A stretch of 64,000 nt of DNA from Camelus dromedarius (lineage: Eukaryota): assembly GCF_036321535.1 (NCBI RefSeq), contig NC_087445.1, forward strand, positions 46,314,001-46,378,000. The letters run 5' to 3'. The notes beneath the pieces were generated by a model. That model worked only from the letters and a program-made list of their open reading frames with translations. It did no database searches and was not told where the DNA came from. The position numbers and the translations under genes are program-made. Shown in pieces: positions 1,804 through 2,065 of this stretch (positions are counted from its first letter, which is position 1; each line of letters begins with the position of its first letter).

Positions 1804-2065
1804 CTATAATTTTGAATTATAAAATAATGAAGTTCCAGATGTCAGTAGCTCCTGGCTGCATAGTGGTAAGAGGTGTGGCTGAGCCTCTCCTGCGGATGAT
1901 TCAGCACCTGTAAAGACCAGGCCAGACTGTTCTCCACCTCTCTGCTGGGCCAGAACTAACTGCCTGAACCAGGAGCTCACAGCACCATCGACTCGCATCA
2001 CCAAAGCTATGCCCAGGCAAAGTCCCACGCTGCTCACAATGAAGCCCATGCCCTCAAACATGAAC
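1804..2065 (-). CDS. PIGO: PIGO last coding exon with extended C-terminus
   Basis: [12 protein letters not shown]...LAQQR, then 44 further codons to TAG at 1806-1804. Confidence 0.9.

Follow-up and report, generated by a model that had tools for sequence, protein, structure and literature searches.

A Lost Stop Codon and a Probably Tolerated, UTR-Derived C-Terminal Tail in the PIGO Proteins of Artiodactyla

Introduction

In the dromedary (Camelus dromedarius), the reading frame of PIGO (GPI ethanolamine phosphate transferase 3) does not stop after the Arg codon with which the coding sequence would be expected to end, and continues through 44 further codons. Two questions follow: whether the missing stop is an error, a mutation private to camelids, or an older change, and whether the added residues serve the enzyme. 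The initial annotation of this locus attributed the missing stop to a short deletion, regarded the change as lineage-specific, and implied that it was important. These claims were followed up in the window, that is, the whole stretch of 64,000 nt that was analysed (GCF_036321535.1, NC_087445.1, positions 46,314,001-46,378,000 of the forward strand), and by comparison with the PIGO genes, proteins, and transcripts of other mammals. Unless marked otherwise, coordinates are positions within the window.

The PIGO Gene of the Dromedary

PIGO lies on the minus strand of the window, as do all features described below. Its ATG is found at 8262-8260 in the list of open reading frames (ORFs). The coding exons other than the last fall within 2237..8262 according to the ORFs and local tblastn, and tblastn places the large exon at ~4085-5623 and the penultimate exon at ~2222-2290. 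Compared with a Camelus PIGO protein (P0176, residues 1-1040) by local tblastn, the exons of the window are 97-100% identical. Both PF01663 and PF01676 are present, and identity reaches 81-91% with placental PIGO and 68-69% with marsupial PIGO. By full-length similarity and domain set, the gene may be assigned as the PIGO orthologue.

The last exon is preceded by an acceptor AG at 2067-2066 and starts at G2065. Its ancestral coding part (1939..2065), comprising the third base of a K codon and FMFEG...LAQQR, encodes the last transmembrane helix and a short native C-terminal tail, and the last-exon peptide is 83-88% identical to PIGO C-termini in a protein search. The R codon, AGA at 1941-1939, is not followed by a stop, and the frame stays open for the 44 codons of the extension (1807..1938) until a TAG at 1804..1806. 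Approximately 90 nt of 3′UTR are left after this new stop, which precedes the AATAAA polyadenylation signal (1731..1736) by ~70 nt. Counted from the ATG at 8262, the protein has 1132 aa without, and 1136 aa with, a four-residue PEVR insert, and a second reading of the minus strand agrees with the coordinates, residues, and 1132-aa length originally annotated. The PEVR residues are added in the region of the catalytic domain by a camelid alternative donor (~6200-6350) and are absent from whales and most mammals in the alignment.

Two further observations concern the 5′ side of the gene. Camelid RefSeq isoforms of 1159-1168 aa carry 32 extra N-terminal residues (MRSPPWAALSRA...) from a predicted upstream start, and the exon for these residues is found at ~8974-9087, in frame with the ATG at 8262. 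A run of N at ~10080-10330 appears as X in the ORFs.

Distribution of the Tail Among Mammals

The C-termini of ~195 PIGO proteins, gathered through an exon-peptide search, two full-length searches, and cluster listings, were compared. A homologous 44-aa tail is present in every artiodactyl sampled (at least 33 species) and in all four main artiodactyl branches, namely camelids, pigs with peccary, ruminants, and whales. It occurs in Camelus (three species), Vicugna, Sus, Phacochoerus, and Catagonus; in Bos (three species), Bison, Bubalus, Ovis (two species), Capra, and Capricornis; in Moschus, Dama, Odocoileus, and Cervus (two species); and in fourteen whale species, baleen and toothed. The 17 distinct credible tails are each exactly 44 aa long. 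The artiodactyl set is without a hippopotamus or a tragulid, and the second full-length search added no artiodactyl family.

In nearly all non-artiodactyl mammals sampled, PIGO ends in ...QQR or a one-residue variant of it. Endings of this type are found in felids, hyaena, mustelids, canids, bears, bats, horse, pangolin, moles, and shrews, and also in primates, rodents, lagomorphs, colugo, afrotheres, xenarthrans, and marsupials, the carnivores and the horse being represented by proteins only. PIGO of Jaculus ends in ...QQT. Two lone exceptions, a Tenrec isoform model and a 76-aa fragment (P0007), finish at about the same length in short sequences of their own and lack an extension, and the more distant short matches (P0008-P0016) end within a few residues of the QQR position. 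Coverage of a whale PIGO query is 100% in artiodactyls and 96% in non-artiodactyls, with the tail as the gap. The comparison across camel, alpaca, pig, cattle, and other mammals for which the initial annotation had called thus finds the tail in artiodactyls and a stop at QQR in the proteins of other orders. The concern raised there, that most other mammals might share the extension, was checked, and nearly all non-artiodactyls lack it. The change is indeed specific to a lineage, which is the whole order Artiodactyla, whales included, and not the camelids.

The extended protein is already listed in RefSeq and UniProt with 1131 aa, or 1132 aa in Camelus. Pig is an exception in that a UniProt model of 1123 aa has a 36-aa tail, with two models ending ...SQELL/RPLT; these 1123-aa models (among P0056, P0159, and P0157) show an apparent splice from a GT (CTG/GTATCT) inside the extension. 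One pig UniProt model of 1086 aa ends ...SHQR and has no tail.

An 84-aa protein with a frameshifted tail (P0001) was considered as a lineage that had lost the tail frame, and was rejected as sequencing noise. Its source, a ruminant-like genomic contig of 1466 nt (L008, from Logan SRR23625869), has 35 indels in 1.5 kb relative to cattle, or ~1 per 43 nt, and is frameshifted in conserved exons as well, including the penultimate PIGO exon. Since real conserved exons are affected too, P0001 is regarded as an artefact. In the 50% cluster library, this protein represents its cluster.

Certain ab initio models run from the PIGO extension on into the next genes (P0174 and P0188). EPY78588.1 of Camelus ferus (2192 aa) follows PIGO to ...GLVFT and then continues into a part that we take to be FANCG-like and into a VCP-like part, and KAJ8794442.1 of gray whale (1610 aa) joins PIGO to a FANCG-like part. 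These models exploit GT sites within the extension, the camel site being CAG/GTGCTG at ~1906-1911. Local tblastn found the FANCG-like part to be absent from the window. The FANCG and VCP run-on models are probably artefacts of gene prediction, made easier by the missing stop.

The Deletion at the Former Stop Codon

PIGO genes with their flanks were compared between Bos, Sus, Balaenoptera, Vicugna, and Dama on one side and Rhinolophus, Pteropus, Manis, and Talpa on the other, so that the exon end and downstream sequence of six artiodactyl DNAs and four outgroups were aligned. In all four outgroup DNAs, TAG directly follows an AGG (R) codon. The outgroup coding end reads ...CAGCAGAGG TAG, and this TAG together with the next 36-37 nt is missing from six of the six artiodactyl sequences. 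Where the outgroups read GTTCTGGCCCAGCAGAGG TAG CCTAGG...GG(G/C)GAGA(A/G)CTGGAGAAC, artiodactyls read ...CAGCAGA(G/A)AG(C/G)TGGAGAA at the junction. The artiodactyl gap amounts to 39-40 nt; it opens with the final G of the R codon and takes in the TAG.

The edges of the deletion share a 3-nt GAG microhomology, within which the junction can be placed anywhere; in the dromedary, this is the central GAG (1940..1942) of CAGCA-GAG-AGGTGG. This GAG closes an imperfect 17-nt direct repeat, TTCTGGCCCAGCAGAG / TCCTGGCCATGGGGAG, whose copies match at 11 of 17 positions and lie 40 nt apart, and MAFFT first placed the artiodactyl coding end on the second copy. Of the original proposal of a short deletion between two CAGAG microhomologies, the deletion (39-40 nt) is confirmed and the exact CAGAG pair is replaced by GAG within the imperfect repeat. 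Because the identical gap is found in six artiodactyl DNAs and set against four outgroups, a single deletion in the artiodactyl stem is the most parsimonious explanation. It could plausibly have come about by slippage or by microhomology-mediated repair.

Downstream of the junction, the 132-nt tail runs colinear with the 3′UTR in all four outgroups (Rhinolophus, Pteropus, Manis, and Talpa). No gap interrupts it in artiodactyls, and both the terminal TAG and the AATAAA are shared. The TAG triplet is aligned in all ten sequences and is thus present already in the outgroup 3′UTRs, and AATAAA is kept in all aligned species but Pteropus, which has AATAAAG at that position. This colinearity upholds the initial reading that the stop was lost and that what is now coding sequence was formerly 3′UTR.

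When the outgroup UTRs are read in the artiodactyl frame, that of Talpa is open through all 44 codons and would end in -SKL. Those of Rhinolophus and Pteropus reach a TAA at codon 42, Rhinolophus having in addition a 1-nt deletion, and that of Manis meets a stop at codon 20. Since the untranslated mole UTR is open for 44 codons and would have the -SKL end, the tail frame and even its ending existed by chance before any translation, the ancestral UTR being open in this frame. By chance alone, a 44-codon open frame after loss of a stop is unremarkable, with a probability of (61/64)^44, or ~0.12.

Authenticity of the Sequence and Presence in Transcripts

As rival explanations of the extension, a fault in the assembly or sequencing of this genome and a mutation private to camelids were considered. 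A run index was queried with exact words from the locus. In 14 DNA runs from three organisms (samples S1-S8), the fraction of 126 sampled 31-mers of positions 1500-2700 that was found is 1.00, and declared RNA-seq runs hold 0.60-0.82 of the words of this stretch, which includes an intron. Across positions 1790-1956, which span both junction and tail, 18 runs (two organisms, five studies) match 14 of 14 words sampled; for most of these runs, the RNA status is guessed. These exact 31-mers in DNA from three organisms and eight samples, and in RNA runs of several studies, argue against an error. The identical deletion recurs in assemblies made independently for alpaca, cattle, fallow deer, pig, and blue whale, which argues against both an error and a private mutation, and a search for supporting evidence of either found none. 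Such a reading retains next to no probability and is effectively refuted.

The extension is also present in mature mRNA. The exact 1131-aa products of cattle and pig were found on 27 and 16 index blocks, respectively, with the longest carrying contig measuring 2-5 kb. As such contigs are shorter than the genomic span of 6.6-7.0 kb, they would represent spliced mRNA, and thus probably cDNA, in cattle and pig. Another extended PIGO (P0083) is encoded on a Logan contig of 3941 nt. Presence of the tail in the protein would follow from the absence of an in-frame stop, which predicts its translation and is presumed to yield a stable product.

Properties and Evolution of the Tail

The tail is hydrophilic. 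It is rich in L (eight), S (seven), G (six), and E (four), as well as in A and Q, and has a single lysine and no arginine. It contains no transmembrane stretch, the maximum Kyte-Doolittle value of a 19-residue window being 0.57. An AlphaFold2 model of the database protein P0164, built on a mammal-only alignment of 39 sequences, is of too low a quality for topology or a fold search (mean pLDDT 42); the tail appears in it as coil with values of 22-24, to which such a model lends little weight.

Parsimony on a six-taxon artiodactyl tree counts 35 substitutions in the 132 nt of the tail, distributed evenly over the codon positions (11/11/13), and 38 in the same columns of the outgroup UTR (12/11/15). 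Per site, this corresponds to 0.27 in the tail and 0.29 in the outgroup UTR; the two flanks downstream have 0.29 and 0.34. For the same taxa, the PIGO large exon shows 87/46/155 substitutions by codon position. Pairwise NG86 dN/dS ranges from 0.39 to 2.5 in the tail as against 0.21-0.30 in the large exon. Branch-wise, the tail has undergone 24 nonsynonymous and 11 synonymous changes (omega ~0.76), and binomial testing gives p=0.44 against neutrality and p=0.003 against the gene's own omega of 0.26. The tail thus evolves like the UTR from which it came, almost neutrally at the amino-acid level. With flat codon positions and an omega of this size, it shows no constraint on its amino acids, and the importance implied by the initial annotation is not supported.

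The reading frame itself has been kept. No internal stop or frameshift was found in the tail of any artiodactyl besides the alternative pig model and the error-ridden contig. The share of possible tail mutations that would create a stop is 4.5-6.8%, which under neutrality gives a probability of no stop of 0.08-0.20 for the 35 substitutions counted and of 0.02-0.08 for ~55 substitutions, the figure assumed when more species are taken in. No indel falls in the tail's 132 nt against ~2 expected from the flanks, and ~4 indel events fall in the 182 nt downstream of it in the same species. The intact frame and the lack of indels are suggestive at most of selection on the length or frame of the tail. 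A constraint on the frame through lethal non-stop mRNAs was considered and rejected: every frame has a stop before AATAAA, so frameshifts would produce no such mRNAs.

These data bear on the proposal that selection has retained the tail for a function, with its sequence loosely constrained like that of many disordered tails. Such a tail might, for example, adjust how stable PIGO is, its residence in the ER, or its pairing with PIGF, or act in regulation or degradation control, and if it did, it would change how artiodactyls regulate the third ethanolamine-phosphate step of GPI-anchor synthesis. The proposal draws on the constant length and intact frame of all 17 credible distinct tails across the at least 33 species, on the probability of 0.02-0.20 that no stop would arise by neutral change, on the absence of indels next to the ~4 events downstream, and on a nearly invariant SGTSLFYN block. 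However, the same nucleotides, those of the SGTSLFYN block included, are equally conserved in the untranslated UTR of the outgroups, and the mole UTR is open in the tail frame for all 44 codons without being translated. Omega is indistinguishable from 1 and differs from that of the gene, the codon-position pattern is flat, and a frameshift would not be catastrophic given the stops in all three frames before the poly(A) signal. A function maintained by selection is accordingly judged rather unlikely. A more specific proposal concerns the camelid C-terminus, which could make the tail a peroxisomal targeting signal (PTS1), as Camelus and Vicugna end in -SKL and this fits the tripeptide (S/A/C)-(K/R/H)-(L/M). 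Yet the ending is restricted to camelids, with -SKS in whales and pigs, -SRS in ruminants, and -LKP in peccary. Its TTA codon is one C/T difference away from the TCA of other artiodactyls, and TTA likewise stands at this site in mole and pangolin, where the UTR is untranslated. PIGO is, moreover, a multi-pass ER membrane protein that is inserted co-translationally, leaving a PTS1 little chance to act. Because -SKL is found only in camelids, lies one base from TCA, and sits on a protein inserted into the ER during translation, a working PTS1 in camelid PIGO is very unlikely. We infer that the tail lacks a function, and the extension gives no indication of an adaptation peculiar to camels.

Origin and Significance

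The history that best fits these observations begins in the common ancestor of Artiodactyla, where one deletion of 39-40 nt took the TAG and the first 36-37 nt of the 3′UTR. The two imperfect repeats, TTCTGGCCCAGCAGAG where the coding sequence ends and TCCTGGCCATGGGGAG 40 nt downstream, probably gave rise to it by slippage or microhomology-mediated repair. Ribosomes would then have read 44 codons of former UTR to the pre-existing TAG. The tail has since drifted almost neutrally, and is best regarded as an addition that an essential enzyme tolerates rather than as an adaptive domain. Taken as a whole, this account of an ancestral artiodactyl deletion and a UTR-derived, near-neutral, tolerated tail is held with high confidence. 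Judged from its distribution among the sequences compared, the deletion would lie at the artiodactyl stem and be as old as crown Artiodactyla, which dates to ~60 My.

The locus offers a clean and datable case in which part of an essential mammalian gene passed from non-coding to coding, with the causal mutation still visible and the untranslated "before" state surviving in sister orders. It is thus useful for the study of how new C-termini evolve, and provides a natural control for work on stop-loss variants in that PIGO tolerates a 44-residue C-terminal addition. The lost stop also explains the artiodactyl PIGO models of 1131-1132 aa, and may account for those that run into FANCG and VCP.

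Comparison With Known Systems

Artiodactyl PIGO, with its 44 extra C-terminal residues and 1131-1132 aa, differs from other mammalian PIGO, which has ~1088-1091 aa and the ...LAQQR end; the two share 83-91% full-length identity, the same Pfam domains, and the same exon layout, and the stop position is stable in nearly all other mammals. Disease-type stop-loss variants in humans belong to the same class of event, in which loss of the stop extends the C-terminus. In contrast to these variants, the PIGO extension is fixed in healthy species, and it is therefore evidently compatible with PIGO function. Within the literature library searched, there was no human case of PIGO stop loss and nothing on the PIGO extension or on PIGO structure.

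C-terminal extensions that arise through stop-codon loss and co-option of the 3′UTR have been described in yeast and Drosophila (Andreatta et al., 2015; PMC4494051). The PIGO tail is of this class: the stop of the outgroups is lost, the tail is homologous to their UTR, and the extension is present in mRNA. As in the cases of Andreatta et al., a conserved stop has been lost and UTR is read to the next in-frame stop, which adds a short, non-domain tail to an old functional protein. Artiodactyl PIGO lost its stop through a 40-nt deletion rather than through a point change at the stop codon. The yeast and Drosophila cases are also recent and still polymorphic (PMC4494051), whereas that of artiodactyl PIGO is old, fixed, and order-wide. 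Thus, artiodactyl PIGO, whose extended proteins were themselves already in the databases, adds a new and well-resolved case of stop loss, in which a real and old extension has probably been merely tolerated.
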